From IMG/VR virus record IMGVR_UViG_3300048924_000191, positions 1-64,000 of that record: a stretch of DNA of 64,000 nucleotides; one strand, given 5' to 3'. The position numbers and the translations under genes were made by a program. Under the pieces are notes generated by a model that saw only the letters and a list, made by a program, of their open reading frames with translations, did no database searches and was not told where the DNA came from. Shown here piece after piece: positions 16,017 through 62,870 of the stretch. The first letter of the stretch is position 1, and the number at the start of each line of letters is the position of its first letter.

Positions 16017-16031
16017 TAAAGGCGAGTCGAA

Positions 16032-29666: not shown

Positions 29667-29687
29667 GTTCGTTACGGATAAACAACC

Positions 29688-30266: not shown

Positions 30267-30288
30267 GTGCGAGGCAGAGGGATGCGCG

Positions 30289-31344: not shown

Positions 31345-32235
31345 ATGAACCCGATTCAGGTAACGGCCTACGGCCTCAAAGCCATCATCCGTCTGCTGCT
31401 CGGCCACACCCCCGATGCCGACCCAAAGTCCACCGTCAACGAACGTCTGGACATCCTCGGCACCGCACGGCCGACCAACAACGAGAAGGTACGCCTTGGC
31501 GTACTGATCGCAGGTAACAAAGGCCACCGCTACGTCCCAGGTGAGGAAGGTATTGCACTGACCTCCATCCAAGACCACACGGCAACCAACGCATCGCTCT
31601 ACGGGCCGATGCCTCTCTGCGTACGCTCTGTGGACGATGACTTGTCCAAAGAGATGCGCGACAAGTACTGCCTGCGTAAAGAAAACACGCTCAACGGTCT
31701 GCCGGTGTACGAGTATTACGGCATGTGGGTCGACATCGATCCTGAAGACGTCAACGTGATCATGCGCAAGATCACTCGCGAACCTAACCAGCCGCCAGTC
31801 ATCGAGATCTTCCATCCGGATACCGAAGACCTGTACCCGACGCCGATCGCTCTCCCGACCACTGGTGCGGTGACTACCACCGACGTTTCCATCAGTTGCA
31901 GTGCGGTACTCACGGTTACCATGCCGGAGAACATCCTCGAAGAGTTCATCAACTCTGCGAAGCTGAAGTACAACGGTGACGAACGTTACGCCGTACTGTC
32001 TGAGTTTGCACTCTGCCTGAGCGCACAACGCACCGTGTCGATCAACACCACCAGCGGCCAAGCCAACTTCCTGGAATCGATCGGCACCCAGATCTACAAC
32101 TTCGCGATGGACCACAAGGCCGTCTACTACAACACTCAGGAACTGACTATCGATTTCGACATCGGTAACCAGATCCCGCTGCTGGGTACTCAGTCCATCC
32201 CGACCATGCAAACGATCGGTGTGACTGTCCCCTAA
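31345..32235 (+). CDS. hypothetical protein (probably virion-associated)
   Basis: 296 aa, AAGGA RBS, strong codon bias. Confidence 0.7.
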   Translation: MNPIQVTAYGLKAIIRLLLGHTPDADPKSTVNERLDILGTARPTNNEKVRLGVLIAGNKGHRYVPGEEGIALTSIQDHTATNASLYGPMPLCVRSVDDDLSKEMRDKYCLRKENTLNGLPVYEYYGMWVDIDPEDVNVIMRKITREPNQPPVIEIFHPDTEDLYPTPIALPTTGAVTTTDVSISCSAVLTVTMPENILEEFINSAKLKYNGDERYAVLSEFALCLSAQRTVSINTTSGQANFLESIGTQIYNFAMDHKAVYYNTQELTIDFDIGNQIPLLGTQSIPTMQTIGVTVP

Positions 32236-41884: not shown

Positions 41885-42048
41885 GTGTTGCTCCAAATAG
41901 CTATTTGGTAGAATTATCAAAGCTTTGATTTTGGGATTGACGCCCACCCGGTATTAGTCGACTAGCACCGGCAACCCCGCGTCCCTCTGAGCGTTAATTC
42001 GATCACCGTAAAAAATTACGGTATTCGCCATAACATCATATCGGCGAA

Positions 42049-48229: not shown

Positions 48230-48742
48230 ATGACCGAGAAGCAGATTCTGCTCGACCACTTGGTTTTGAAGAACAAAGCTGTACTCGACCAATATAAAGT
48301 CACGCTGCGTACTTCCGACCTTGACTTCAGTGACCCAGAAGCAGGTAACTGGGAGAGCGGTGACAATACTCGAATCATCGCCACCATGCGTCCCTCGAGG
48401 AAGGTGACAGGTAGCAATATCTATTACTACTCCAGGAACGACATGCAAGCCGCTTTTGCGGCGATTGGTTATGAAGAGGTACCGTGCGCCATCGAAGGTA
48501 CTCCAGACGTCGGTAAGGTCCTCTCAGAGCTTGCCAGGCACTACAACTTCCAGTTCGACCCGAACCACGTCCTCGATGTTCAACAAGTCGATGACCAGTT
48601 CTCGTTTGGTGTAAGTTCTAAGTGTTTGCTCTGGATCGGCACGCTCACCGTGAAGATCGTAGAAGGGTACGGAATCCCTCTCGATGTGGCGTTTCCCAAC
48701 AACGTTCTGGATGGATTCATACCGCCAGAGTTCGTGGGGTAA
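48230..48742 (+). CDS. virion array protein, domain A
   Basis: FSDP..NT..G...YYSR; LLWIG; LDVAFPNNVLDGF. Confidence 0.7.
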   Translation: MTEKQILLDHLVLKNKAVLDQYKVTLRTSDLDFSDPEAGNWESGDNTRIIATMRPSRKVTGSNIYYYSRNDMQAAFAAIGYEEVPCAIEGTPDVGKVLSELARHYNFQFDPNHVLDVQQVDDQFSFGVSSKCLLWIGTLTVKIVEGYGIPLDVAFPNNVLDGFIPPEFVG

Positions 48743-48751
48743 ATTCTATGT
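48741..48751 (+). promoter_or_regulatory. candidate late promoter AAATTCTATGT
   Basis: identical 11-mer at 49315-49325 and similar AATCCTATGT upstream of the 62870 gene; contains TATG. Confidence 0.45.
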
Positions 48752-48778
48752 CCCTTTTATCAAGCAGAGAACCAGGTT

Positions 48779-49315
48779 ATGGCCACTGATTACACCCTTG
48801 ACGAAGACAGTGTCGTCATCGATTTGATCCGCACGCAGAACCCTGGCCAGGTCCTCACGTCCAGCCTGGTGACGTTCGGCTTCCCCAACGTAAACGTCCC
48901 AAGTCAGCAGTTCCCTCACGATACGCTGATTGTTGCGACGGCAATACCTGGACGCCGATATTCAGGGAGTCAGTCTTTCAACTACAACCGGGTGCCGATT
49001 GCTGAGTTCGTTGACCCCCGACTCCCCAACCAGACCACGTTCGTTATCGCTAATGAACGTACGCTGGCGGACCTGTTGCCTGTGATCAATGAGCGGTACG
49101 ACATCCGTCTGACTGCTGACAAGATCATCAACCATTCGATCCCCAATTTCCAGGATCAGGGAATTGCAGAGTTTGAGGTGGAGCTCGAAATCGCCCCGAA
49201 CTCGAAAGTGTACAAGGACGCAATGGTGATCAAGCTTGTTCCTGAGCTGATCCCGCTGTCGGCTGTTATCAAGAATCGCCAACTCGATGGCCTTACTTAC
49301 CAGCCTCCCGCCTGA
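48779..49315 (+). CDS. virion array protein, domain A
   Basis: FGFP..YSGSQSFNYNR; LADLLPVIN; LDGLTYQPPA. Confidence 0.7.
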   Translation: MATDYTLDEDSVVIDLIRTQNPGQVLTSSLVTFGFPNVNVPSQQFPHDTLIVATAIPGRRYSGSQSFNYNRVPIAEFVDPRLPNQTTFVIANERTLADLLPVINERYDIRLTADKIINHSIPNFQDQGIAEFEVELEIAPNSKVYKDAMVIKLVPELIPLSAVIKNRQLDGLTYQPPA

Positions 49316-49325
49316 AATTCTATGT
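49315..49325 (+). promoter_or_regulatory. candidate late promoter AAATTCTATGT
   Basis: repeat of the 48741 motif, upstream of a strongly codon-biased gene that has its own terminator. Confidence 0.45.
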
Positions 49326-49372
49326 GACGTCTGTGACTCACTTACCCCACCTTCAACAAGAGAACGGTCCCC

Positions 49373-49918
49373 ATGGCTGACAATCTTACCTTAGAATCGA
49401 AGAAGGTTCTTTGCGACATGATCAACCGCAACAACGTGGAGTCCGGCTCCTCGTTGACGCCTGAGTTGGTGGATTTCGGTATCCCCTCTCAGTCGAACGA
49501 TGCGAAGAATACCGACATCACCGTTATTGCAAAATCCGGCTCTGGTTACACCGGTCAGGAAGTCATCAACTACAACCGCCTGCACCTGACCACCGAAATC
49601 GGTAACCCGTACGTGGCCTCGGCGGTTGGTCGTAACCTGATCTTCCCGATCGGTGAAGCGCTCAAGATCGCAGACATCGTTCCGGCCATCAACGCTCGTC
49701 TGGCCATCAACCTGCAAGCGGCTGACTTCACCGACGGCGATCTGCCTGAGTTCACCGGCACGCCGAACGAGATCCTGGACGTCCAGCTGTTGGTAAAGGC
49801 TGACTCGCTCTGCTACCGCGGCAGCTTGACCTTCCAACTCAAGGCCGAAGACATCCTGCTGTCGACCGTCATCGTGAACAAAGTGATGGATGGCCTGACC
49901 TACCAGCCTCCTGCTTGA
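49373..49918 (+). CDS. virion array protein, domain A (probably abundant subunit)
   Basis: FGIP..YTGQEVINYNR; SLCYRG; MDGLTYQPPA. Confidence 0.72.
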   Translation: MADNLTLESKKVLCDMINRNNVESGSSLTPELVDFGIPSQSNDAKNTDITVIAKSGSGYTGQEVINYNRLHLTTEIGNPYVASAVGRNLIFPIGEALKIADIVPAINARLAINLQAADFTDGDLPEFTGTPNEILDVQLLVKADSLCYRGSLTFQLKAEDILLSTVIVNKVMDGLTYQPPA

Positions 49919-49946
49919 TTTCACCCCGATCAGACATAAAGCACAC

Positions 49947-49979
49947 AGACGAGGGGTGGGTTAACCCCACCCCTCGTCT
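49947..49979 (+). terminator. 14-bp hairpin (terminator or processing site)
   Basis: AGACGAGGGGTGGG-ttaac-CCCACCCCTCGTCT. Confidence 0.6.
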
Positions 49980-50005
49980 ATTCTGCCCGATCTAGGAGAC
50001 GCAAC

Positions 50006-50803
50006 ATGTTTCTACTACCTGGCGGAGCGGAGAAAGCTCTGACTGATGCCATTCACGCAGCCAACCCGCTCGCCGGTGACGTGCATGTCGATGACCTGTA
50101 CTTCGGCCTGATCACCAAATCGGCTGACCAGTCGGGTGCTGTAGAAGTACCTGTAGTGGCGATGTACAACAGCGACTTCGAAGGCTACATCCGCTTCAAA
50201 TACGACCGTCTCGATCTGGGGCGTGCGTACCAGGGGATCAAACCTCAAGTCAAGCGTGTGGGTTATCCTACACTCTATCGACTGTTACCCATCATCAACG
50301 AAACGCTGGGTCTGTCACTGACTGAGCGTGACGTGGTCGACGTGGCCATTACCTGGTTGGGTGAGAACGAGCAGGTGAACATCCCTATCGTCTCCAAACC
50401 TGACTCGCTGGGTTACGAGGGACAGTTCCTTGTTGAATACACTCGGGTACGTCCGGAGTTGGCTTCGATTGCCAACCGAATCCTCGATGTGTTGAAACAT
50501 CCGTTGGACCCGAAGTTGGGACAACGTTCGATGTCGATGAACACTTGGGGGATCGACTTCACTGACGATCAAGCGTCCCTGTTGACTAACGCAGGTGCTT
50601 GGCGTTATCCCGATCAAGTACGCAAGGTGATGGAAGGTCATGGGTTCTTCAACTGGCCTCAAGCACCTTGGTACTCCCTGATCGTTTCGGCTACGTCGGA
50701 TATCCCCACTGCCAACAAGGAATACACGCACGTTATCATTCAACCGAACGTGTCGTACCCGAATCACATTGGCGACGCTTACTTCCACTATAACCGGTCA
50801 TAA
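50006..50803 (+). CDS. virion array protein, domain A plus HYN domain
   Basis: FKYDRLDL; SLGYEG; ends YFHYN. Confidence 0.7.
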   Translation: MFLLPGGAEKALTDAIHAANPLAGDVHVDDLYFGLITKSADQSGAVEVPVVAMYNSDFEGYIRFKYDRLDLGRAYQGIKPQVKRVGYPTLYRLLPIINETLGLSLTERDVVDVAITWLGENEQVNIPIVSKPDSLGYEGQFLVEYTRVRPELASIANRILDVLKHPLDPKLGQRSMSMNTWGIDFTDDQASLLTNAGAWRYPDQVRKVMEGHGFFNWPQAPWYSLIVSATSDIPTANKEYTHVIIQPNVSYPNHIGDAYFHYNRS

Positions 50804-50815
50804 AGAGGGCTCGAT

Positions 50816-51649
50816 ATGAGCTTGTACCCTGATCCGCTAGAAGCCGTGGTAGAGTCCATCGAGACTCTCAACCCTGGCGTACAGCTGGCCGTAAACGAAT
50901 ACAACTTCGATCCTTCGATGGCGATTCCGGAAGAGGCTTCGGGTGTCAACACCCAGATCCATATCTCGGCCAAAGGTGCATCCACTCCATACGCCGGCGC
51001 TGTGGACATCAAACACATCCGCCTCAAGCTGTCTGACCTGACTACGCTGATCCCGTCAGAGATTGCCGTGAGTGGTATCACTACTACTCTTGATCTGGCG
51101 TTGGCGATCAACAAGTTCTACGGCACCAACTTCACCACTGCGGATATCGTGACCAGCGATGCTGAGTTGGTAGATGGCGCTGGCGATGTCACCCTGGTAG
51201 CTAAGGCCACTTCGCGTGGCTGGATCGGCCAGGTAACGTTCCATGTGACGAAGGGACGGATTCCTCTCACCGACGTCATTACTGTGACGCGTTTGCCCGG
51301 ACTCAACTACCCAGACCCGTACGAAGCCAAGCCTTTCGGTATTGCGTATACCTACTGGCGCGATTACTCCCTACAGCACGCTATCCTGGACGTTCTCCAG
51401 ACAGGTGCACAAGGAGACCTCGAAGCGGTCAAAGACGCCATGGTCAACACCACAGGCGATGCCTGGGTCACTACCGGCTCTAGCCGTTACTCTCTCGAGG
51501 GTGCGGAGATCCTTTACGTCGGCGATACCGCGGGCTATCCAGAGTTCAATCAGAACTACGAGAAAGGCGTCGTGGTTAAATTGAGTGCAGCCTGTCTGGG
51601 TTATTCCGGTCGTCTTTTCCTGCACTACAATCTGCCAGAAGTCCTCTAA
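50816..51649 (+). CDS. virion array protein, domain A plus HYN domain
   Basis: SRGWIG; LTDVITVTRLPGL; LFLHYN. Confidence 0.7.
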   Translation: MSLYPDPLEAVVESIETLNPGVQLAVNEYNFDPSMAIPEEASGVNTQIHISAKGASTPYAGAVDIKHIRLKLSDLTTLIPSEIAVSGITTTLDLALAINKFYGTNFTTADIVTSDAELVDGAGDVTLVAKATSRGWIGQVTFHVTKGRIPLTDVITVTRLPGLNYPDPYEAKPFGIAYTYWRDYSLQHAILDVLQTGAQGDLEAVKDAMVNTTGDAWVTTGSSRYSLEGAEILYVGDTAGYPEFNQNYEKGVVVKLSAACLGYSGRLFLHYNLPEVL

Positions 51650-51657
51650 GGAGATAG

Positions 51658-52440
51658 GTGATGGATAGCGGTGACAAGATCCGCGAGCTTATCAACCTCG
51701 CCAATGACCCTCCGAAGTTATTCACAACGCGTAACCTTCGTCTCGATGTTCCAGTCCCCGATGCGGGTGATGGTTGGAACACCAAGATGGAAGTGGAAGG
51801 TATCCCAGGCCGTGGTTATTACGGCACTGAGGAGATCTACTACAAGCGCATCCCGCTCGAACTGGTAGAACGTTCCACTCCGCTGCGTTCGATCGCTCCA
51901 CTGACGCCACAGCTCGTCCTGGACCTGTTCAACGGTGCTACCGGCCTGTACATCACACTGGAAGATGTCGAACCCTTCACGCCTCCTCAATTGGAGGACG
52001 GTGATTCGGGACAAGTCGACATCGTAGCAGTTCCATTGTCGATGGGCTTTACTGGTACTGCGACGATCCTGCTGGAGTACGGTAAGGCTTGGTTGGATAC
52101 GGTCGTTTCCGTTCGCGTGCTGCCGGTGCTGAAACATCCGATCGTCGTATTGAATCGGATGTCTACAAGGATGTTGACGTGGGGTATGGACTTCACTTCA
52201 CTGCGCGACGCCATCCGGCCTGACAGTAAAGGTGATTACTCCAACTGGGACGCTCTCCAAGCCGCTTGCGTGGAGCTGAACATCCCGACCTGGATGAAGA
52301 ACAAGATCACCGACCAACCGACGTCAGCGGTGCCTGACAGCAACCAACTGTTTGACCGTGTAGTGATTCAGGCAAGCGTATCCAGTGAAGGAATGGATGG
52401 CAAGGTCTACCTGCACTACAACAACCTGGAAGAGGTTTAA
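51658..52440 (+). CDS. virion array protein, domain A plus HYN domain
   Basis: YYGTEEIYYKR; SMGFTG; VYLHYN. Confidence 0.7.
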   Translation: MMDSGDKIRELINLANDPPKLFTTRNLRLDVPVPDAGDGWNTKMEVEGIPGRGYYGTEEIYYKRIPLELVERSTPLRSIAPLTPQLVLDLFNGATGLYITLEDVEPFTPPQLEDGDSGQVDIVAVPLSMGFTGTATILLEYGKAWLDTVVSVRVLPVLKHPIVVLNRMSTRMLTWGMDFTSLRDAIRPDSKGDYSNWDALQAACVELNIPTWMKNKITDQPTSAVPDSNQLFDRVVIQASVSSEGMDGKVYLHYNNLEEV

Positions 52441-52442
52441 CC

Positions 52443-53390
52443 ATGCCACTATTCACCAAGCCGTCTCAAGCCTTGGTTTATGACCTCATCAATGAGGCGA
52501 ACCCGGACCTTCCGATCGTGCTCTCGCCAGCTAACTTTAAGTTGGGTGCCCCAGCCGCTGGTACGGTGCCTGGCCGTCCTGAGCTGAACACGGTAGTAAC
52601 CGGCTCGGCTATCGGTACCGACTACATTGGTCGTAAACCGCTCAACTACCAACGCCTCTCGCTCAACAGCCTGTTCCGTGGGATGGTGGTGCAGATCAAC
52701 AAGTATTCGGCTAACCAGAACTCTGGCTCGTCGGGTGCTATCGTATTCACCCTGTATCAGCTCCTGCCGATCATCAACACGCTGTACGGCATGAACCTCA
52801 CTGAAGACGACGTGACCAACGTCAACATCACGCGGGGTACGGCGCAAGAGAACGGTTTCTACACCTCGACCGTGACCGTGAATGCCAAGGCGACCTCGCT
52901 GGGCTACATCGGTTCGTTCGCACTGAAATGGCGCGGCGCTCCACAAGACCTCGAGTCGATGATCACCGTGACCGATCTCGCTGCTCGTCTGTTCCCAGGC
53001 GGTAACACCTTCGATGGCACTCACCCAGTCGTTGTCAACAACATGGCGTACAACATCGATTGGACGTCGTTCATCGCTACTGCACCGTGGGGTAACTTCC
53101 CAGGTAACCCAGTGGCTGGTAACGATACCCCAGCGTTCGGTAACCGGTTCATCGCAGAACTCAACCGTCTGTACGGTAAGGGTCTGGTGGGTTCGGTCAA
53201 CAACGCGCCTGCATACGCTTACATGGATTGGGGCGGTGTCGTATACGACCTCAGCACTCAAGCCGGTCGAGACGCCTGCCCTCTGGCTAACTCCAAGTAC
53301 TACAACCGTGTGCTGGTCTGGACTATCCCAGATTACGACACCGCGCGTGGTTCGGGTATCGGCCAACACTTCATCCACTTCAACGTCTGA
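52443..53390 (+). CDS. virion array protein, domain A plus HFN domain
   Basis: LVYDLINEAN; YQRLSL; SLGYIG; ANSKYYNRV; FIHFN. Confidence 0.7.
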   Translation: MPLFTKPSQALVYDLINEANPDLPIVLSPANFKLGAPAAGTVPGRPELNTVVTGSAIGTDYIGRKPLNYQRLSLNSLFRGMVVQINKYSANQNSGSSGAIVFTLYQLLPIINTLYGMNLTEDDVTNVNITRGTAQENGFYTSTVTVNAKATSLGYIGSFALKWRGAPQDLESMITVTDLAARLFPGGNTFDGTHPVVVNNMAYNIDWTSFIATAPWGNFPGNPVAGNDTPAFGNRFIAELNRLYGKGLVGSVNNAPAYAYMDWGGVVYDLSTQAGRDACPLANSKYYNRVLVWTIPDYDTARGSGIGQHFIHFNV

Positions 53391-53401
53391 GGATAGACTC
53401 C

Positions 53402-54274
53402 ATGGCGTACATGACTCAGTCACTCCCCGACGTCCTGGCGGCTATCAACGCCGCCAACTCGACGACGTACAAGGTCACCGAAATCGACTTCGGCGCACCT
53501 CAAGCGTTGTCGGGTACGTGGAAGGGGCAAGCAACATCCCGCAACACCGGTATCCGCATCACCGCCAAGGCCGGCAGTCCGTATCAGGGCAAACGCGATC
53601 TGACCTACGATCGACTGAACTTGGGTTCGCTGAATGCAACTAACCTCCCGGGGTTCAAGTGCTCGGCGTACAATGTCACCACCGTCTACACATTGCTGCC
53701 GATGTTGCAGTACTGGACCGGTATCCAGTTCACCACCGACGATCTGGAAGACGCGCCGCTGGTAGACAATGGTGACGATACCCATTCCGTCACTCTGACG
53801 GCCAAGACCACCAGCCTGGGCTGGATCGGTACCGCGCCACTGACCATCACCAAGGGCGCTGCCCCGCTGGATGCGTTGATCACAGTGACCTCGCTGAACG
53901 GTTTGAACTACCCAACCGCCAGTGATCAGGACACTTACGGTGCGATGTACCTGTACCCGTACGATTACACCAACTACTTCAGCACGCTGTCCCCAATCGC
54001 ACCAGGTACCCTCACCAGCACGCAAGCAGATGCCCTCGTGGCCATGCTCCTGGCTACCGACATCGGCGCCGGCAAGGCGCTGTGGGCGAACAACCCTGGT
54101 GCGACGGCGTGGAACCTGGCGAACGCAACGGTGGTCAGCAACGGTCTCAACAACCCGACCCTGCCAACCAACCCATCGTACAAATACGTGATGGGTCTGC
54201 GCCTCGATCCGGCTGTGTTGACTCCTGCGGGTCTGATGTACCTCCACTACAACGATCCATTCGACGCGTCGTAA
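53402..54274 (+). CDS. virion array protein, domain A plus HYN domain
   Basis: YDRLNL; SLGWIG; LDALITVTSLNGL; MYLHYN. Confidence 0.7.
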   Translation: MAYMTQSLPDVLAAINAANSTTYKVTEIDFGAPQALSGTWKGQATSRNTGIRITAKAGSPYQGKRDLTYDRLNLGSLNATNLPGFKCSAYNVTTVYTLLPMLQYWTGIQFTTDDLEDAPLVDNGDDTHSVTLTAKTTSLGWIGTAPLTITKGAAPLDALITVTSLNGLNYPTASDQDTYGAMYLYPYDYTNYFSTLSPIAPGTLTSTQADALVAMLLATDIGAGKALWANNPGATAWNLANATVVSNGLNNPTLPTNPSYKYVMGLRLDPAVLTPAGLMYLHYNDPFDAS

Positions 54275-54281
54275 GGGGTCA

Positions 54282-54309
54282 TAGACGAGCGCCGGTGGGC
54301 GCTCGTCTA
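54282..54309 (+). terminator. 12-bp hairpin at the boundary of two array sub-blocks
   Basis: TAGACGAGCGCC-ggtg-GGCGCTCGTCTA. Confidence 0.55.
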
Positions 54310-54331
54310 CTAACCAATTGGGAGATTATCC

Positions 54332-55357
54332 ATGCTTCGCGCCATCTTCGGTTTCGACCACATCGCAAAGAACGTGAGCGACACGTGGCTGCCAAACTGC
54401 GGTTATGTTTTTAGCAAGACCGCCTCAGGCACCAACCGTGGGGTCATCATTACACCTGACGGATCGTTGGCTGCGACACCCTCTACCGGCAACACGCCGT
54501 ACGTTCAGGTGTTCCACGATCTGTCCAAACACCTGGTTGCGCCTGTTAGCACATTCACCATCGGTATCCGCGCTAAACAGTTGGCGTTAGGCAATAGTGG
54601 TGGTTTCCTATACCTAGCCGCTGAGGCAGTCCCTACCTCGTTCATGTTGCTGTTGAACTTTCAGCAATTGACGAATATCGGCGTTGTGGGTGGCGAGAAC
54701 TATATTGAGATCACATTCGATCTGATAGCAGCTACCGCCACCTACTACATCGACGACGTGTTCTTTACCAGCATCTCCATCAACACGATCTCGTTGGCTA
54801 ACCTAAGAGCCGGCATCGTCCAGGTGGTCTACACGCTGAGCTACCCGGCCAACGTGGCGGGTATCACGGCAGTGCGTGACATCTACCTGACCGACAACTA
54901 TCCAGGTGATGGTTACGTGGGTCGTCTGGGTCCTCGCAAGATATTCCCTGTTACGCTTGACAGCGCCTCAGGAACTGATTGGACCACCAGCGATGGGTCT
55001 GGGCTTCTGACTGCTCTAAACGTCCCTATCGAGACGGCTGGAGCTGCTACCATGACCTCCGGCGTCAGCAAGGCACCACTGGTGGTGGGATTGAACCCAG
55101 GGTCTCTACCAGCGAACGCCAACGTCGATGGCGTATTCGTCATGATGGCCGGTAAGGTAGATCAGGCCGGCGCACTGACAGGTCTCTCGGCAACCAACGG
55201 CGGGAAGACCATTCTCGCTCAGTCGAAGGCGATCGGCACGGCGTTCAAGTACGGCAACCCATTCGGTGTGTTCACCCGCGCCCCTAATGGCAGTCGCTGG
55301 ACTGCTGCTTCCATCGACGCGACCACGCTCTCATTGACTCCAGACGTAGCGAGTTAA
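54332..55357 (+). CDS. virion array protein, family B (lectin/LamG-like beta-sandwich head)
   Basis: MLRAIFGFDH; YIEITFD; RDIY..D..G.LGP; APNG..WT..IDAT. Confidence 0.65.
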   Translation: MLRAIFGFDHIAKNVSDTWLPNCGYVFSKTASGTNRGVIITPDGSLAATPSTGNTPYVQVFHDLSKHLVAPVSTFTIGIRAKQLALGNSGGFLYLAAEAVPTSFMLLLNFQQLTNIGVVGGENYIEITFDLIAATATYYIDDVFFTSISINTISLANLRAGIVQVVYTLSYPANVAGITAVRDIYLTDNYPGDGYVGRLGPRKIFPVTLDSASGTDWTTSDGSGLLTALNVPIETAGAATMTSGVSKAPLVVGLNPGSLPANANVDGVFVMMAGKVDQAGALTGLSATNGGKTILAQSKAIGTAFKYGNPFGVFTRAPNGSRWTAASIDATTLSLTPDVAS

Positions 55358-55360
55358 GCC

Positions 55361-56377
55361 ATGTCATTAACCGTACGGGCAGTGCAAGCTTACGCGCTCG
55401 GTAAACCACTGGCAGCTTCCACGGTTCGGTCGATCACCGCTTATGCGCTGGTTGATACGAACCCGGTGGTTCCTGGTCCACCGGCGCCTACTGATTACAA
55501 GGCCGATCAGATCGACATCTTGTACGATCTGATCGAGAAGAGTAACCCGGGTTTCAAAGCGCAATATCCGAAAGGTACCGTGCAGTTCAGTGCGGTGACG
55601 GCGGTTCCCACGGTACCTGGGGATGGGTACAAGACCGATACGTCGATCTTGGTGTCTCCGGCACCTGGTAGTTCGGCACTGGGTCGTCAGACGGTTCGTT
55701 ATCGCCGTATCGATTTCGGTACCATCTTCAAGCACATGACGCTGACCCTGAACGATTACGTCGCTTCAGGTACGTTGTCAGCGGCGACGTGGAAAGCTTC
55801 GTTTGCCTCGAAGTTTGGGATCAAGATTCCTGCTGCAGACATTGCCAACACGACAGCGCTGACTAGCGGTGTGTTGACCAACATCAACGTGATCGCCACC
55901 AGCTGGTGCTATAAAGGTACTGTGCAGTTGACGTGGACGGTAGGACCTCGTCCTTTCACCTCCATCGTCACGGATGCAAACCGTGCGCTGGTTGGGCGGT
56001 TTTACCCAGGCAATAACAACGACTTCACCACCCCCGGCCGTAAACCGCAGGGTGAGATGTTGGTCTACTGTCAGGACGCCAGTGTTATCTCGTCGTTCCT
56101 GGAAGCGTTCACTAGCGCTTCTGTTCTCGCCTCGTCCCACAGCACAGTTATCAACTTGGTTAACTGGCTGCTGGCTAACACGAAGCGCACGGATTGGAAC
56201 GTCGGTGATTCCTCCTCTGGATCAGGTGGTGTAACCGGACTGACCTGGTATCGGTACACGCTGCCCAATGCCGCTATCCCAGATGCCAACTCCGCCAAGT
56301 ACAACCGTTGTGTCGTCTTGCAAAGCGTGGCCGGTAGTTGGTTCGCTGGCAAGATCATCATCCACTACAACGTGTAG
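55361..56377 (+). CDS. virion array adaptor: two N-terminal strand repeats, domain A, HYN domain
   Basis: TVRAVQAYAL/TVRSITAYAL at 17-aa spacing, Pro linker, YRRIDF, IIHYN. Confidence 0.7.
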   Translation: MSLTVRAVQAYALGKPLAASTVRSITAYALVDTNPVVPGPPAPTDYKADQIDILYDLIEKSNPGFKAQYPKGTVQFSAVTAVPTVPGDGYKTDTSILVSPAPGSSALGRQTVRYRRIDFGTIFKHMTLTLNDYVASGTLSAATWKASFASKFGIKIPAADIANTTALTSGVLTNINVIATSWCYKGTVQLTWTVGPRPFTSIVTDANRALVGRFYPGNNNDFTTPGRKPQGEMLVYCQDASVISSFLEAFTSASVLASSHSTVINLVNWLLANTKRTDWNVGDSSSGSGGVTGLTWYRYTLPNAAIPDANSAKYNRCVVLQSVAGSWFAGKIIIHYNV

Positions 56378-56385
56378 GGTCCGTC

Positions 56386-56880
56386 ATGGGTATTTTCGTA
56401 TCAAGCCAGGCGGACTTGATTGCGATGATCAACGTTGCGAGCGGTGTCAACTTCACCGCTTCCGACTTGGTCTTCGGCAAACCAAGAGCCGCTACCTCCG
56501 CTGAGATCACTCAGTTCGGAAAGAACAGCGCTGTCGCTGTGCGGGCCTCCGATACCACGACGTTGGTGGCCGGATTCACGACCTTCTTCTACGACCGACT
56601 GGATCTGAAGACGCTAGAGCTCTTTGACTTGACCACATGCTTCTGTGCAGACGGACTGGCCAAAGACGCGTGGTTGGGTACCGTCATCGGTTACCTCAAC
56701 GTCCCGTTCACGCCGACACATCTGGTCGAACACAGCTCGACTACGGTGAACGGTAAAGTGAATGTCCAACTGGAAGCCACGACCGATAGCCTGGGTTGGT
56801 TCGGCACAGGGACGTTGGTGTTCGGTGGTTATCCAGATATCTCGACAGCCTTCACTGACAACAAATTGACAGGCTTCTAA
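56386..56880 (+). CDS. virion array protein, domain A only
   Basis: LIAMIN..LVFGKP; FYDRLDL; SLGWFG; ISTAFTDNKLTGF. Confidence 0.7.
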   Translation: MGIFVSSQADLIAMINVASGVNFTASDLVFGKPRAATSAEITQFGKNSAVAVRASDTTTLVAGFTTFFYDRLDLKTLELFDLTTCFCADGLAKDAWLGTVIGYLNVPFTPTHLVEHSSTTVNGKVNVQLEATTDSLGWFGTGTLVFGGYPDISTAFTDNKLTGF

Positions 56881-56895
56881 GCCGAGGAATCGATC

Positions 56896-57273
56896 ATGAA
56901 TGATTGGCCGAACTACCTGATCCGTCAGGACTTCACCGAACCAGGTGAGGTGCTGAGTGTGATCCCGCTGGGCCTACTCAACGAGGCGGATCAGCGACTG
57001 ATGGCCCAAGTGCTGTCTGAGTACGCACCGCAAGTCGATAAAGACAAGTGGAACATGGACGAGCACGGCACGGAATATAGCCTGAATGGCGCTGAGGTCA
57101 TCTACAACGGTCTCAACCATCGCGACCTGCCAACCTTCAGCACGTACAAGTACGCCCTCGGGTTGCGCTTCCCAGAACGTTCTACGGCACCCGTAGGTAC
57201 TATCTTCCTGTGCTGGCATGAGCCGGTGGAGGAAGAGCCAGTTGCTGAAACACCACCTGTGAGTGAGGAGTGA
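56896..57273 (+). CDS. stand-alone HYN-type domain
   Basis: aligns with the C-terminal half of 53402 (NGLN..LPT..YKY..GLR); GAGGA RBS. Confidence 0.65.
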   Translation: MNDWPNYLIRQDFTEPGEVLSVIPLGLLNEADQRLMAQVLSEYAPQVDKDKWNMDEHGTEYSLNGAEVIYNGLNHRDLPTFSTYKYALGLRFPERSTAPVGTIFLCWHEPVEEEPVAETPPVSEE

Positions 57274-57277
57274 TCTC

Positions 57278-58312
57278 ATGCTTCGTGCAATGTACGGTTT
57301 TGATCACTGTGTCAGAACTCCAGCACCTGCCGTTGGTGCTGTGAACAACCCTTCGGTAGGTTTCGGTTACGCCAATGCCACACTGCTGAACCCTACCCTC
57401 ATGGCGGTGGACAGTAACGGTTTTCTTGGCGGTTACTCCTCAGCTCAGAACGTCAACCTGGCGTTCGACATGACGGGTCTGATTCCACCTAACCCGACCA
57501 AGGTCACGTTCGGTTGGCGTGTAAAGACCCTCCAAGTCTACGGCGCTGCTCACGCGATGATCTCGTTCTCGGTCCCAGGTACGCCTAACGATACGACTGC
57601 GTACATCATCCAGATGGCAGCAGCCAACGCCCCGTGGCTGCCAACGGTAGGTAACGAGGTCTACGTCGAGCTGACTTACGACTTCGTGACGTTCACGCCT
57701 ACCCTCACAGTCAACGGCGTCCCTGTGACTGCTACGATCGGTAGCGCTCCTAACACCGCTCAGAAGGCTGCGTTCGTGTCGGGTGCCTGGACGATCAACT
57801 TCACGCTCGCCAACACCGTGAACGCCCGTTATGCCTACCGCGACATCTACATCGTCGATGCGGTGGCGGGTGACGGCATGGTGGGTCCGCTCGGTCCTCA
57901 GAAGCTGTTTCCAATCACCTTGGACGCCGCAGCAGGGGCTGGCTGGACACCTTCGTCTGGTACGCTGTTGGATGTGTTGAACGCTGCCTTGCCAGCTAAC
58001 CCAACTGCCACTTCGCCAAGCGACAAGACTCCATTGGTCACCAGCCTTAAGACCAGTGCTCCTGAAGGTAGTCGTGTCACTGCGGTGAGTCTGTCGTTGT
58101 CGGGGACCAGTAGTGGTGACGGGGCATCGACCAGTAAGGTTGAGATCACCCAAAACAGTCAGAGCTTCTCACCGAAGTTTCCCGTCGTGGCGAAGACTAC
58201 CACCTACGGTGCGCCAATCGGGATCTTCCCGAAAGCGCCTGATGGCACCTCGTGGGATCTGGCAAAAATCGATGCGACCACCCTCAAGCTGACCCCTGAC
58301 ACCGCCGCCTGA
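57278..58312 (+). CDS. virion array protein, family B
   Basis: MLRAMYGFDH from ATG 57278 behind GAGGAG; YVELTYD; RDIYIVD; GPLGP; APDG..W..IDAT. Confidence 0.65.
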   Translation: MLRAMYGFDHCVRTPAPAVGAVNNPSVGFGYANATLLNPTLMAVDSNGFLGGYSSAQNVNLAFDMTGLIPPNPTKVTFGWRVKTLQVYGAAHAMISFSVPGTPNDTTAYIIQMAAANAPWLPTVGNEVYVELTYDFVTFTPTLTVNGVPVTATIGSAPNTAQKAAFVSGAWTINFTLANTVNARYAYRDIYIVDAVAGDGMVGPLGPQKLFPITLDAAAGAGWTPSSGTLLDVLNAALPANPTATSPSDKTPLVTSLKTSAPEGSRVTAVSLSLSGTSSGDGASTSKVEITQNSQSFSPKFPVVAKTTTYGAPIGIFPKAPDGTSWDLAKIDATTLKLTPDTAA

Positions 58313-58329
58313 TTCGAGGATTTATCATC

Positions 58330-59298
58330 ATGGCAGTTAGAGCAATTATCGGGTTCGACCACCTGCCGCAGAACGACACGAGCTGGATTAACTACGCCAG
58401 CCACGACATGACGCGCGCCGCAGACTTGTCGGCCCAAAACACCATCGTCAACGGATGGCTGGTCAGTAACGCTACTGCATCGGGCGCTGAGCGCGTAACC
58501 ATTCCTCTCGACAAATACCTGGTCGCTCCGGTAGCCAAGATCTGGTTCGGTATCCGCTGCCGTTCTACTCTCAACGCGCGTGGCGGTGCAGGCATCATCT
58601 ACCTGAACGGCACCTACGTGTTGTTGGATACGTTGATCGGCGTCACGGGTACTACCACGTACCTTGAGTTCTCCTACGACGTTGCCAGTGGTGCTGTAGA
58701 ACGTTGGATCAATGGCGTCAAACAGGCTAACGGTACCAGTCCTGGTGCAGGTCTGCGTAACCTCACGTTCGGCTTGGAAGCCAAGGGTAGTCTCAACGGT
58801 CGATACGACTGGCGTGATATCTACGTCGTCGATGATCAGGGAGCTGCACAAGGTTTGCCGGTAGGTCCTCTTGGCGCTCAGGTGACTTACCCCATCACTT
58901 TGGATGCGGCTTCGGCTTCGGACTGGACCACCACTCCGAGTGGTGCCACCCTGCTCGAAGCGTTGAACGAGCCTGGTGCGGTCCCTACGGCTAAAATCGC
59001 AACGTCGGCTTCCAACGCTCCTCTGACGGTGAGTCTCAAGTCCTCAATGCCTGCGGGTGTCGTGGTCAATGCCATCGAACTCATGGGCGGTGGTCGTTCG
59101 ACCACGACCAGTACGGCGAAAGTCGCGGCGAAGATCTCGACGGGCGGTACGGATGTTGCAGGTCTGACGCCCGTTGCGCCGATCACCAACTATGCGTACA
59201 GTCTTGGGTTCGGTGTGTTCCACAAGGCTCCGAATGGCACCCCGTGGACCAATACCAACATCGACGCTACGGATCTTGTCCTGACGCCTGATGTTTAA
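58330..59298 (+). CDS. virion array protein, family B
   Basis: MAVRAIIGFDH; YLEFSYD; RDIYVVD; GPLG; APNG..WT..IDAT. Confidence 0.65.
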   Translation: MAVRAIIGFDHLPQNDTSWINYASHDMTRAADLSAQNTIVNGWLVSNATASGAERVTIPLDKYLVAPVAKIWFGIRCRSTLNARGGAGIIYLNGTYVLLDTLIGVTGTTTYLEFSYDVASGAVERWINGVKQANGTSPGAGLRNLTFGLEAKGSLNGRYDWRDIYVVDDQGAAQGLPVGPLGAQVTYPITLDAASASDWTTTPSGATLLEALNEPGAVPTAKIATSASNAPLTVSLKSSMPAGVVVNAIELMGGGRSTTTSTAKVAAKISTGGTDVAGLTPVAPITNYAYSLGFGVFHKAPNGTPWTNTNIDATDLVLTPDV

Positions 59299-59309
59299 GG
59301 GGATTCTCC

Positions 59310-59981
59310 ATGCCAGTCAATATTGCAAACATCCAAGGCTACGCATTGACGCGCCTAGCCTCGCCGGTGAACATCGCCAACATTCAGGGTTACGTGCTGG
59401 CTAACCCACCTGCGCCCGTCCAACTGCGAGACATCCGTGGTTACGTGATGGTGACTGCGCCAGCGCCCGTTCAGTTGCGGACCATCAATGGCTACGCCAT
59501 GGTCCCGTTCCAGGACTTGCCGAAAGGTAAGACGGCAGCAGTGGCATTGATGGACATGATCCTCGTTCGGTTGAAGAGTGCCCGTCCAGCCTCGCACTTC
59601 AATTTGGGTGCTGTGGAGCTCGGTACCGAGACCGACTACAACGCCAAGGTGAAGTTGACACCGAATGCGGTAGCCTTATTGTCAGGGGAGATGTACTTCC
59701 ACTACAACCGGATTTATCTGTCACGGATGCCGAGTCTGAGTTCGATCGTGATCGGGAGCGCGGCTAACACCCACGCCCTGATTCCAGCGATCAACACTCT
59801 CACCGGCATGCAACTCACCACGAACGACATCGTGAATGAGGACATTCCAGCAGGGTACGTGGAAGTCACTCTGACTGCAGCGGCTACCAGTTATCTGTTC
59901 ATTCCAGGGACTCAGTGCCAAGTGGGTAACACACCGTCGCTGGCAGCTCAGTTCAAAACTGACACGATCCTCTGGTCGTAA
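59310..59981 (+). CDS. virion array adaptor: four N-terminal strand repeats plus domain A
   Basis: four 17-aa repeats PV[NQ][IL]..I.GY; FHYNRIYL; THALIPAIN. Confidence 0.7.
   Translation: MPVNIANIQGYALTRLASPVNIANIQGYVLANPPAPVQLRDIRGYVMVTAPAPVQLRTINGYAMVPFQDLPKGKTAAVALMDMILVRLKSARPASHFNLGAVELGTETDYNAKVKLTPNAVALLSGEMYFHYNRIYLSRMPSLSSIVIGSAANTHALIPAINTLTGMQLTTNDIVNEDIPAGYVEVTLTAAATSYLFIPGTQCQVGNTPSLAAQFKTDTILWS
59313..59510 (+). repeat. 4 x 51-nt coding tandem repeat in two sub-types
   Basis: PVNIANIQGY x2, then PVQLR[DT]I[RN]GY x2. Confidence 0.85.
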
Positions 59982-59994
59982 GGAAAAACAAACC

Positions 59995-61086
59995 ATGAAG
60001 ATTCATGCGATGTACGGTTTGGACCTGCCGACCACGAACGCGACAGGCAACGGCAGTAACGTACTTATCACTCGGCTGCCAAACGGGCCGTGGCAGTCGA
60101 TGTCGACAAACAGCGAAACCAATTTCAGTATCCAGGTTTGGACGGATGGATGGCTGAGAATGGGGATCGGTGCCGGAGCTCCGAACTTTGGCAACTATCG
60201 ATTCCGCGCCGTAGCTGACATCAAGGAAATGATCCCAGTCGTTACACCAACCTCGAACTTGTACTTTGGCGTTCGGGTAAAGGCCGGTACCGGATACACC
60301 GGCAGTACTGTGGTGACGTTGTCTTCCGCGGTAGACATCAATAACCTGGTCAACCTGTTCCAGATCACGGATCTGCCCGGTTACGTGATCGATAAGTCGT
60401 ACTACGTAGAGTTTAACTTGAACTTTGCGAACAACACTATCGATCGCCGTGTCGATGGTAAACCACTGGCGCAGATGGCCATGCCTGCTTGGATGGCCAC
60501 CGCAGTATCTGCGTCGCCTGGCGGTACCAGCGTTTATGTGGGTATCGGTGCCAGCTTCTCGTACAGTATCAGTCAGGGCCAAACCCACTACTTCTGGTGG
60601 CGTGATTTCTACTGCGTCGAGTGGGAGGCTGGGGAACTCGCTCAGTTTCTGGGTCCTCAGGTGGTGGAAAAGGTACCTGTCGATACAGTGGCGGCTACTG
60701 CCTGGACTGCTAGTACTGGCACTGCGACTTCGGTCTTGAAGACGGGGTACAGTAACCCATCCACTGCCATCGGCGCTCCAACCCTCACCACCGACGATGC
60801 GATGACGCCGGGTAGTATCACCTACAACCCCACCAACATTCCAGTGAATGCCGTTCTCAACGGTATCCTCGTGAAGGGACGCTCAGCAGTGAGTGTAAAT
60901 GCCACGGGCAACTTGGGCGTCTCCGCTACGGTCGGTGGGGTGGAGTCTTCGGATGCCAACGTAGCGATGGTAGCTGCGCAGACGTTCTACGACCGGATGT
61001 TGTTCCTCACTAAAACCCCAGGCGGGCTACCATGGACTCAGCCAGCGTTGGCGGGCCTTACCGTCAAAGCCAAACCGAAGGTGTAA
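59995..61086 (+). CDS. virion array protein, family B (divergent)
   Basis: MKIHAMYGLD; YYVEFNL; WRDFY; FLGPQ; TPGG.PWT. Confidence 0.62.
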   Translation: MKIHAMYGLDLPTTNATGNGSNVLITRLPNGPWQSMSTNSETNFSIQVWTDGWLRMGIGAGAPNFGNYRFRAVADIKEMIPVVTPTSNLYFGVRVKAGTGYTGSTVVTLSSAVDINNLVNLFQITDLPGYVIDKSYYVEFNLNFANNTIDRRVDGKPLAQMAMPAWMATAVSASPGGTSVYVGIGASFSYSISQGQTHYFWWRDFYCVEWEAGELAQFLGPQVVEKVPVDTVAATAWTASTGTATSVLKTGYSNPSTAIGAPTLTTDDAMTPGSITYNPTNIPVNAVLNGILVKGRSAVSVNATGNLGVSATVGGVESSDANVAMVAAQTFYDRMLFLTKTPGGLPWTQPALAGLTVKAKPKV

Positions 61087-61089
61087 TCC

Positions 61090-62292
61090 ATGGCTAACCC
61101 TAAATTCGTACTTCGATCGCTTGACGTGTTTGCGATGTACGGCGTGAATAATCTTCCGCCGTTTGGTACCCCTGGTCCTGCTGCGATTCTTACAGCGATC
61201 AACAAGGAGCAGGGCATCACACTCACCTCAGCACAGGTCACGGTTGGTGCGCCTGTAGCAACGACAGGCGACACGTTGTTCAATACCTCGGTGACACTGA
61301 CATCAATCCCTAACAAGGGGTTTAAAGGGACGTTCACGGCTCGATACAACCGAGTCAGTGGCAGTCTGTCAGCGGTGTTGAACAACCTCACCATTCCCGG
61401 TGATGGAGCTTTCACGGTAGGTACCACTCACGACCTTATCCCTCTGATCAACACAGCCACGGGCTTGACGTTGGTTACTGGAGACATCGTGAATGAGGCC
61501 ATTCCGGTTGGGACAAACTCGGTCGATCTGAAAGCTGCTTCCACGAGTTACTTCTTCCTGCCTGGGTCGACCTTCAAGGTTTACGCAGGTGAGATCGCAG
61601 GTGAGCCGTGGATGTTGTTCGACGTGAACTCGTTGACTGACGTCAAGACCACAGGTTCGACGGGTACGCTGGCAAGTGCAGCGCAGGACAACACGTACTT
61701 GATTGATGGGGAACCTACCCTGAAGATCACCGGTACGGGTTCCCTGACGATCAACCTCGGTCAGTTGTTTGATTCGAGTATTCCTGAATGGACGCTGGAA
61801 TGGTCGAGTCGTTTGAACACGACCACCACAGGCTACGCTAACCTGCTCCGTCTTGGCAGTGCGACGGCGTACCAGCTGGTGCAACGGACTTCCGATTCTG
61901 GTTTCGGTCTGAGGATACAGCAAGGTATCGACTTCTCGACACAAGCCGGTGCATGGAACTTCCCGTTCGGCAGCGTTGCGAAGAACGGCGTGCTGACTCG
62001 TTACGCCGCTCAGAAGAAGAATGGTCTCATCACCATGTTTGTGGACGGTAAAGCTACCAACATGGCCAATGGTACCGGTTCGACCTACAACAGTAAATCG
62101 TTTTCCGCAGGCGCCGGTGTTGCAGCGTGTGACCGGATTACCCTGGGACTTCTGGCGCAAAACATCAGTCATGTTCGTCTCAGTAAGTTCGCTCGGTATC
62201 CGATCGACTACACGCCGAAACCGTTCAAGTCTGCTCCAACGCTTGCGCAAGCTGCACCGAACACCGATCTCTCTGGATTCGATCCAGCATAA
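61090..62292 (+). CDS. virion array adaptor with inserted LamG/ConA-like domain
   Basis: one N-terminal strand (VLRSLDVFAM), domain A, then WTLEW..ITMFVDG..ISHVRLSKFARY LamG-like block, terminal LAQAAPNTDLSGF. Confidence 0.7.
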   Translation: MANPKFVLRSLDVFAMYGVNNLPPFGTPGPAAILTAINKEQGITLTSAQVTVGAPVATTGDTLFNTSVTLTSIPNKGFKGTFTARYNRVSGSLSAVLNNLTIPGDGAFTVGTTHDLIPLINTATGLTLVTGDIVNEAIPVGTNSVDLKAASTSYFFLPGSTFKVYAGEIAGEPWMLFDVNSLTDVKTTGSTGTLASAAQDNTYLIDGEPTLKITGTGSLTINLGQLFDSSIPEWTLEWSSRLNTTTTGYANLLRLGSATAYQLVQRTSDSGFGLRIQQGIDFSTQAGAWNFPFGSVAKNGVLTRYAAQKKNGLITMFVDGKATNMANGTGSTYNSKSFSAGAGVAACDRITLGLLAQNISHVRLSKFARYPIDYTPKPFKSAPTLAQAAPNTDLSGFDPA

Positions 62293-62297
62293 AGCAG

Positions 62298-62330
62298 CAT
62301 ACAGCCGGGGCGCAATGCCCCGGCTGTATG
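62298..62330. terminator. 14-bp hairpin between convergent genes
   Basis: CATACAGCCGGGGC-gcaat-GCCCCGGCTGTATG. Confidence 0.78.
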
Positions 62331-62345
62331 TCGTTGCCGTAAGGA

Positions 62346-62870
62346 TTAAGCCTCGGCGTCGAAACCACTCAGGTCAGTGGTAGTCGCCGCTTCATCCAAA
62401 GGGACGTCAGCGTCCGGGATGTCCAGGACGGCGGCGTAGGTGCCGGTGTACAGCAAGCTGGACACGTTGGCGACCACGTCGGCCGAACCCGGGGTATCTT
62501 CGTTCACTGGGCGAACGATGTTCGACAGAGTGAATTCGGATTCCAGCAGACCCAGAGCGGTAGCGATCTTGGTCTTGACCTGTGGGTCGGTGTCGGAAGC
62601 TGCGATCACCACCGGAATATCTTTGGCGGCAGCGATTGCCTGGCCGGAAGCCAGAGCCAGACGGGTGTAGGAGAAAGTCTGCGAACCAGAGAAACCCTGG
62701 TTGGCGATTGCGGTGAAGGTCACCGAGGTGTTACGACCGCCAGTACCGGCAGCGGCCGAAGGCGCACCGACGGTAACTTTGGCCAGAGTGGCGTTCAGAC
62801 CGGCGTTCGCACTGTTGACCAGTGCCAGGACGTTCTCCTGAGCCGTGATGGACGGGTTGATCTTTGCCAT
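62346..62870 (-). CDS. virion array protein, domain A (inverted, own promoter)
   Basis: 174 aa from ATG 62870 (MAKINP); FSGSQTFSYTR; SLLYTG; LDEAATTTDLSGF. Confidence 0.72.
   Translation of the reverse strand: MAKINPSITAQENVLALVNSANAGLNATLAKVTVGAPSAAAGTGGRNTSVTFTAIANQGFSGSQTFSYTRLALASGQAIAAAKDIPVVIAASDTDPQVKTKIATALGLLESEFTLSNIVRPVNEDTPGSADVVANVSSLLYTGTYAAVLDIPDADVPLDEAATTTDLSGFDAEA

Follow-up and report, generated by a model that had tools for sequence, protein, structure and literature searches.

A DUF7941 gene array of a phiKZ-like jumbo phage probably encodes parts of a modular, self-assembling virion fibre

Gene content of the DUF7941 array

The window analyzed here comprises the first 64 kb of the virus record IMGVR_UViG_3300048924_000191, which has a total length of 243,378 bp and bears direct terminal repeats. 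Between positions 48230 and 62870 the window harbors a gene array whose products probably are parts of a modular, self-assembling virion fibre; the probability of this reading is estimated at roughly 0.7. In the map of open reading frames (ORFs), 17 genes follow each other closely on the plus strand between 48230 and 62292, and one convergent minus-strand gene at 62346-62870 completes the array (genes are designated as in Table 1). The original prediction, which was made from the sequence alone, described them as about 18 paralogues. Eighteen genes are indeed present, but they belong to two unrelated families: 13 genes carry a shared domain A and one encodes only the C-terminal domain of the same family, whereas four belong to a different family, here termed family B.

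Domain A was identified with Pfam family PF25613 (DUF7941), the profile of which comprises 276 positions and has a curated gathering score of 27 bits. The profile exceeded this cut-off at 17 places with scores of 32-198 bits, 13 of them within 48233-62846 and four within 28896-31257. No further match occurred in the 243-kb genome, and none of 14 control genomes was matched. The prediction of 13 array genes with domain A was thereby confirmed for 48230, 48779, 49373, 50006, 50816, 51658, 52443, 53402, 55361, 56338, 59310, 61090 and 62870c. The conserved positions that had been proposed for this domain were recovered when the 17 N-terminal modules were aligned with MAFFT (I17/N21, F35-G36-x-P38, N46-T47, G61...Y67-x-R69..L72, D118 and S145-L146...G150 in the numbering of the 49373 protein). 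Median identity among these modules is only 20%. A sequence search of the Protein Data Bank (PDB) with a full-length DUF7941 protein as query returned chance matches only, with E values above 0.2.

Profile positions 1 to about 173 represent domain A, i.e. the N-terminal module, and the remaining positions represent the C-terminal 'HYN' domain. Seven genes are full-length and cover profile positions of approximately 1-275 (50006, 50816, 51658, 52443, 53402, 55361 and, outside the array, 30289). Four short forms (48230, 48779, 49373 and 62870c) cover approximately positions 1-175 and end just past a short peptide, hereafter the arm, that follows the module.

One DUF7941 member is divided exactly past its arm (56878-56898) into a gene for the module, 56338, and a gene for the C-terminal domain, 56896, with the profile match extending across the stop codon. 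The same split between arm and C-terminal domain occurs in Burkholderia phage FLC9 and in the relative L004, in which the orthologue of 49373 has 67% identity. Interpretation of 56338 and 56896 as a broken gene was rejected, because the latter possesses a ribosome-binding site of its own and the split is kept in both relatives. Since it is shared with L004 and FLC9, the split represents an old two-gene arrangement.

Position and conservation of the arm peptide

In the alignment, the arm follows roughly the pattern [LI]-x-x-[AV]-[FI]-x(3-4)-L-x-G-[FLY]. The original prediction quoted eight such peptides as lying right after domain A. All eight are present and seven of them directly follow the last strand of the domain (48230, 48779, 49373, 50816, 53402, 56338 and 62870c, i.e. 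seven of the 13 domain A genes), but the eighth, in 61090, is located at the far C-terminus, past an extra domain of 200 residues. Degenerate arms are present in 50006, 51658, 52443, 55361 and 59310. The peptide had also been reported from a gp128-like protein encoded upstream of the array and from genes 29688 and 30289; it was found in all three, twice in 29688 and once in 30289.

The bare regular expression of the arm yields 79 six-frame matches in the genome and is not significant genome-wide. It was therefore dropped as evidence and replaced by position-dependent tests: because the bare motif is common, only the position of the arm carries weight. At a background of 2.7e-4 per residue, the occurrence of at least seven of 13 arms within a 25-residue window has a probability of ~1e-12, a value that is best read as conservation and not as the outcome of independent events, because the genes are paralogues. 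Across 19 orthologues of the 49373 protein, arm residues L163, G174, Y177 and P180 do not vary. Orthologues of 61090 retain the terminal arm, which is duplicated in three of them. The arm is also shared by gp138, gp141, gp143, gp83 and gp160 of Salmonella phage SPN3US and by paralogues of FLC9.

Arms of the window occur in four visible flavours. The gp128-like protein, 29688, 48230 and 56338 share F-x-[DN]-N-x-L-x-G, while VI-x-N-[KR]-x-x-DGLTYQPPA is found in 48779 and 49373, ITVT-x-L-x-GLNYP in 50816 and 53402, and TTDLSGFD in 61090 and 62870c. The distribution of the arm behind N-terminal modules, behind lectin domains and at the end of a baseplate wedge protein suggests that it may be a portable short motif, which is presented here as a new observation.

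Predicted head-to-tail docking

For the 49373 homodimer, the interface score ipSAE reached 0.61, 0.37 and 0.45 in three prediction runs, whereas none of three controls, in which the partners were unrelated, exceeded 0.01. An ipSAE of 0.45 passes the mark of the tool. In its calibration, this mark separated 20 of 30 true homodimers and one of 23 monomers that reached it from the remainder; these counts apply only roughly here, as our own alignment was used. In the best run the interface is asymmetric: residues 92-94 and 160-180 contact residues 1-28, 43-70, 75-87, 109-112 and 147 of the partner. The predicted interface is thus head-to-tail, with the arm of one copy placed on the N-terminal module of the other.

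A monomer model was available for 61090, in which confidence is good for the N-terminal module and the middle domain and low for the first 21 residues and the arm (predicted local distance difference test, pLDDT, of 52-58 for the arm region). The arm had been expected not to fold back onto its own protein, and in this one monomer model it is indeed undocked on its own module. Head-to-tail polymerisation through the arm, the central proposal of the original prediction, agrees with the 49373 homodimer prediction, with the conservation of the arm in orthologues and with a recent preprint on phage Goslar that is discussed below.

Lectin-like proteins and an N-terminal strand motif

The family B proteins (54332, 57263, 58330 and 59995) are two-domain proteins of the concanavalin A type that lack a DUF7941 module, and none of them has a match in Pfam. 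With a Foldseek probability of 1.0, the AlphaFold2 model of 58330 (Table 1) and the middle domain of 61090 matched solved lectins and carbohydrate-binding modules, among them legume lectins, domain 4 of AbnA, the lectin-like subdomain of clostridial neurotoxin binding domains and the receptor-binding domain of mycobacteriophage TM4 gp23. Target-normalised template modelling (TM) scores of these matches reach 0.62, at 7-17% identity to solved lectins. The 58330 model also resembles many uncharacterised two-domain models of viral proteins with TM-scores of 0.65-0.77. A concanavalin A-type fold is likewise present in the middle domain of 61090. A relationship of these domains to toxins was rejected, as the matches to botulinum neurotoxin binding domains reflect the generic jelly-roll fold at 6-11% identity. 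In P0031 and P0067, metagenomic relatives of 58330 and 59310, the family B gene and the following DUF7941 gene form one ORF. This fusion ties family B to the fibre.

A strand motif of the approximate form [VIL]-R-x-[IVM]-x-[GA]-[YF]-x-[LMH] occurs at 54335, 55373, 55424, 57281, 58336, 59322-59475 (four copies) and 60001 and at the N-terminus of 61090. It marks the N-terminus of all four family B proteins, forms the first jelly-roll strand in the 58330 model and, in 55361 and 59310, precedes the DUF7941 module in two to four repeats. Of its 22 genome-wide six-frame matches, ten fall in the array. Distant orthologues of 61090 contain four copies, compared to one in 61090 itself. A link to the N-terminal domains of phiKZ gp131-135 did not withstand inspection and was discarded. 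The motif is possibly a second docking strand, and it is presented here as new.

An arm-like peptide at the end of the baseplate wedge protein

The protein encoded at 26470-28698 matched phiKZ gp128 (PHIKZ128, 9xqs_C) with an E value of 1e-114 over residues 3-608. Its arm-like peptide LSEMFTDNQLSGY ends 14 residues short of the C-terminus, and the nearest arm is that of 56338, ISTAFTDNKLTGF. An orthologue with 73% identity (P0071) retains this tail. In a wider survey, 1.8 billion cluster representatives were searched for gp128 homologues and the best 150 matches were analyzed with a strict arm pattern. The pattern occurred in the last 70 residues of 26 of these 150 proteins, several of which contain two or three tandem copies. 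Its background is 2.1% of 70-residue windows from the protein bodies, and shuffled tails gave a mean of 2.5 and a maximum of eight matches per 150 (binomial p 3e-16). One of the homologues, 1,310 residues long, is a fusion with a DUF7941 N-terminal module (E 9e-14). The SPN3US homologue of gp128 has LAERVADRDMDGF at its end, and the gene that follows, gp83, encodes the arm LAQLVTKRALDGF; at the metagenomic locus L010 the tail of gp128 likewise resembles the arm of the next gene.

The anchoring of arm-linked chains on the gp128-like protein, as originally suggested, appears plausible and gains comparative support from the 26 tails and the DUF7941 fusion. That a baseplate wedge protein seems to bear the linking peptide is a new lead. 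Each of the six baseplate wedges of phiKZ contains one gp128 and two gp87, according to the passages on gp128 in the phiKZ paper (PMC13250141), which do not describe an arm.

At the locus of another gp128 homologue, P0125 (L009), the protein contains two arm-like peptides, and a gp139-like gene (DUF7208) and RuvC come directly downstream of its gene, with no DUF7941 gene between. In the window, the gp128-like gene is followed by 28710, the product of which could take two arms and hence act as a bridge.

Expression signals and genomic context

For 49373 and 62870c, an own promoter and a downstream hairpin had been proposed. A scan for sigma-70 promoters detected three sites, compared to 7.9 expected, none of them upstream of either gene, whereas perfect hairpins of 16 bp and 14 bp are present. 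Phages of the phiKZ-like type use their own polymerases, and the sigma-70 scan therefore says little. The combination of a CATAAAGCA box and, within 2-5 bases, a perfect hairpin of 14-16 bp occurs only three times in the genome (at 4215, 49935 and 62288), always on the plus strand and just past gene ends, with the TAA of the box serving as stop codon in two cases. The element is possibly a terminator or an RNA-processing signal. A 10-mer, AAATTCTATG, has only two copies in the genome, at 48741 and 49315, just upstream of the short-form genes 48779 and 49373. Late promoters of phiKZ contain TATG.

The genome encodes a phiKZ-type major capsid protein, subunits of the non-virion RNA polymerase and baseplate genes; homologues of phiKZ gp120, gp55, gp68, gp123, gp128, gp129, gp130, gp131, gp139 and gp157 were identified. 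Judged by this gene content, the phage is a phiKZ-like (chimallivirus-type) jumbo phage. The first 48 kb of the window is for the most part a module of baseplate and fibre genes. As in phiKZ, the order of genes is gp129 / gp128-gp127-gp126, and the gp139 homologue comes after them. The nucleotide sequence of the array had no match among phage records, so that relatives are found at the protein level only, and one of them, with a genome of 246 kb, has an identical gene order in the array.

Table 1. Genes and features of the window. PF25613 is the Pfam profile of DUF7941.
Name	Position	Strand	Assignment	Basis
gp157 homologue	7192-8514		phiKZ gp157 homologue (brace ring)	
gp130 homologue	13285-14559	-	phiKZ gp130 homologue	
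gp131/gp133 homologue	14634-16679		phiKZ gp131/gp133 fibre N-terminal domain homologue	
gp129 homologue	23508-26438	-	phiKZ gp129 homologue	
gp128-like	26470-28698	+	phiKZ gp128 baseplate wedge homologue; arm-like LSEMFTDNQLSGY at 28615-28653	PDB 9xqs_C, phrog_3222
28710	28710-29666	+	two tandem DUF7941 N-terminal modules, armless; directly after wedge gene	two PF25613 matches in one ORF; alignment
29688	29688-30266	+	DUF7941 N-terminal module, then two tandem arms	PF25613, motif, alignment
30289	30289-31332	+	full-length DUF7941: short N-terminal module, arm LPDSSPQDQLSGF, C-terminal domain	PF25613 positions 5-274
gp139 homologue	31345-32235	+	phiKZ gp139 homologue (baseplate spoke protein)	phmmer E 2e-38 against phiKZ gp139
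gp123 homologue	36626-38314	-	phiKZ gp123 homologue, RNA polymerase subunit	
gp120 homologue	39617-41947	-	phiKZ gp120 homologue, major capsid protein	
48230	48230-48742	+	short DUF7941: N-terminal module and arm	PF25613, alignment
48779	48779-49315	+	short DUF7941: N-terminal module and arm	PF25613, alignment
49373	49373-49918	+	short DUF7941; arm is residues 160-180	PF25613, orthologues, dimer prediction
hairpin	49935-49981	+	CATAAAGCA box, then 16-bp perfect hairpin, downstream of 49373	
50006	50006-50803	+	full-length DUF7941: N-terminal module, arm/linker, C-terminal 'HYN' domain	near-whole PF25613 profile
50816	50816-51649	+	full-length DUF7941, as 50006	near-whole PF25613 profile
51658	51658-52440	+	full-length DUF7941, as 50006	near-whole PF25613 profile
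52443	52443-53390	+	full-length DUF7941, as 50006	near-whole PF25613 profile
53402	53402-54274	+	full-length DUF7941, as 50006	near-whole PF25613 profile
54332	54332-55357	+	family B lectin-like two-domain protein without DUF7941 module	no Pfam match; phrog_2448; aligned with modelled paralogue
55361	55361-56377	+	two short N-terminal strand repeats, then full-length DUF7941	PF25613, motif scan
56338	56386-56880	+	N-terminal module, arm ISTAFTDNKLTGF, then stop	PF25613, motif
56896	56896-57273	+	DUF7941 C-terminal domain alone; own GAGGA ribosome-binding site	PF25613
57263	57263-58312	+	family B lectin-like protein	ORF map, alignment
58330	58330-59298	+	family B lectin-like; concanavalin A-type jelly roll and second beta-sandwich	AlphaFold2 pLDDT 92.7, fold matches
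59310	59310-59981	+	four N-terminal strand repeats and DUF7941 N-terminal module, degenerate arm	PF25613, alignment
59995	59995-61086	+	family B lectin-like, most divergent of the four	phrog, alignment
61090	61090-62292	+	DUF7941 N-terminal module, concanavalin A-type jelly roll, C-terminal arm	PF25613, model, orthologues
hairpin	62288-62330	+	CATAAAGCA box, then 14-bp perfect hairpin, between convergent 61090 and 62870c	
62870c	62346-62870	-	short DUF7941; counterpart of abundant SPN3US gp160	PF25613, SPN3US match

Comparison with known systems

Arrays of this kind were described between 2016 and 2026. The basic idea is published, and it is confirmed and extended here. In an April 2026 preprint on Goslar (bioRxiv 10.64898/2026.04.21.720040), DUF7941 is described as a chimallivirus-specific family. 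Goslar virions contain approximately 2,140 copies of gp23 and 580 copies of gp22. In AlphaFold 3 predictions, each linker docks on the N-terminal domain of the following protomer. After purification, gp22 formed filaments visible by negative stain, and the authors propose a 'fibre cloud' that is anchored on the peripheral baseplate. As in the phage analyzed here, gp22, gp23 and eight further DUF7941 proteins of Goslar belong to one Pfam family and occur in two forms with or without the C-terminal domain; the linker is proposed to dock on the next N-terminal module, and some members carry carbohydrate-binding domains. In contrast to Goslar with its 10 modules, 17 are present here, the lectin domains are mostly encoded by separate genes without a DUF7941 module, and one member is split into two genes. 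A further difference is the arm of the wedge protein, which the searched passages of the preprint do not mention; the term 'gp128' is absent from its text. The suggestion that proteins with the 'HYN' domain act as caps or branch points is not supported, as Goslar gp22 carries this domain and forms filaments alone.

SPN3US has 17 PF25613 matches, FLC9 has 15 and phiKZ three. The size of the array is therefore not exceptional, given the numbers in SPN3US and FLC9. The SPN3US proteins are known as 'paralog family B', a family of 17 to 20 members (gp83, gp138-154, gp160/161 and gp237) that was detected in virions by mass spectrometry and includes the very abundant gp141 and gp160 (PMC5105663, PMC5694885). 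They are homologous to the proteins studied here (~36% identity for 53402), form an equally large family and have arms in five members. Unlike the present array, that of SPN3US includes a repeating three-gene unit (gp145-153), and its partner proteins differ from family B. The only SPN3US match of 62870c is gp160. This fits the proposal that 62870c encodes a major subunit; for 49373, which had been proposed as well, the argument is one of analogy to Goslar gp23. In phiKZ, the three DUF7941 proteins gp126, gp127 and gp143 share with the present phage the gene order gp129 / gp128 / DUF7941 gene, and gp127 is located in the baseplate and gp128 in the wedge. The differences are the low number of modules, the divergent linker motif and a gp128 without a clear arm.

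Chaperone-usher pili offer an analogy. In these pili a peptide of one subunit completes or docks on the next by donor-strand exchange, and the polymer starts at an anchor and can carry an adhesin. The array belongs to a phage virion with no usher or chaperone, and the comparison implies kinship neither in sequence nor in fold.

Proposed fibre assembly and alternatives

We propose that the arm of one DUF7941 protomer would dock on the N-terminal module of the next, giving rise to flexible head-to-tail chains. The short forms 48230, 48779, 49373 and 62870c probably are the bulk subunits. Lectin domains, either fused as in 61090 or encoded by the separate genes 54332, 57263, 58330 and 59995, probably bind glycans of the host surface and would widen the capture radius. 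Such a chain is probably primed on the baseplate, where a gp128-type wedge protein with the same arm would provide six starting points per virion. By motif logic alone, the two-armed 29688 could branch the chain, and the arm-less 28710 and 59310 could bridge or terminate it. The analysis itself shows that the proteins belong to the family, where the arm lies and how well it is conserved, which folds are present and which interface is predicted. That the proteins polymerise in this phage, that they bind glycans, that the wedge serves as anchor and that some members branch or cap the chain is inferred.

Several points weigh against this interpretation. A strict arm match is absent from 124 of the 150 gp128 homologues, and phiKZ gp128 itself has no clear arm. 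The phiKZ paper (PMC13250141) places the N-terminal domain of gp127 in the outer baseplate, where the gp139 band ends, rather than on gp128. The ipSAE values express the model's own confidence and were obtained with our own alignment of 19 sequences. The predicted interface is not enriched in positions conserved among the paralogues (seven of 25 compared to 39 of 134, p 0.63), a result that neither supports nor refutes it. Sugar binding is read from fold similarity at 7-17% identity, and the phage is known from a metagenomic record alone. Finally, a homologue of the nuclear-shell protein chimallin was not matched when phiKZ gp54 was used as a single query without a profile. Chimallin is known for its strong sequence divergence.

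The main conflict concerns the location in the virion. Because tailless particles of SPN3US contained its 17-member family, these proteins were classed as belonging to the head (PMC5105663, PMC5694885), whereas phiKZ and Goslar point to the baseplate. The presence of the family in tailless particles conflicts with fibres that are confined to the baseplate. The DUF7941 proteins might accordingly be associated with the head, as capsid decoration, in the neck or as internal or ejected proteins, and the arm would link subunits to each other or to capsid proteins there. The labels 'head' or 'head ejection?' given to SPN3US gp138-154 and the abundance of gp141 and gp160, which matches that of the tail sheath, are in line with such a location. 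We nevertheless regard it as unlikely, because many phages have an arm on the wedge protein gp128, which in one case is fused to a DUF7941 module, the genes are located among baseplate and fibre genes, and fused lectin domains suit an external role. Free filaments could also co-purify with heads.

It is also conceivable that the arm merely connects domains and packs on its own protein, so that the products of the array would be a diversified set of monomers for receptor binding or decoration that attach one by one and do not polymerise. The motif does lie between two globular domains in full-length members, expansion of paralogues with lectin domains is typical of host-range cassettes, and the predicted interface is not enriched in conserved positions. 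However, the short forms end in the arm and have no second domain to be linked, and the gene at 56386-56880 stops right after it, in a split that is kept in L004 and FLC9. The arm moreover ends unrelated architectures, namely the tail of gp128 and, past the lectin domain, 61090. Docking was predicted in trans for 49373, but not in cis in the 61090 model, and gp22 of Goslar forms filaments. An array of separately attached monomers is thus considered very unlikely.

The fibre reading can be extended to a scenario for the order of its parts, which is advanced only tentatively and with the odds against it. The arm of gp128-type proteins might be a conserved primer of DUF7941 fibres, with six starts per baseplate, and the arm flavours might determine which module pairs with which arm. 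The 17 modules could then form a heteropolymer, branched and of defined order, on which lectin heads are displayed, and the N-terminal strand motif would attach the lectin proteins without a module.

Implications for jumbo phage biology

The arm of the wedge protein, the arm flavours, the portability of the arm and the second N-terminal strand motif are the points that our inferences add to the published picture. DUF7941 fibres may serve chimallivirus-type jumbo phages in locating their hosts. Surrounded by a cloud of lectin-tipped filaments of micron length, a virion would have a much larger capture radius. The array described here adds an example with rich diversification, from a clade that has not been cultivated. 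The putative arm of the wedge protein provides a testable answer to the question of where such fibres originate, and it bears on the disagreement between the assignment to the head in SPN3US and to the baseplate in Goslar and phiKZ.

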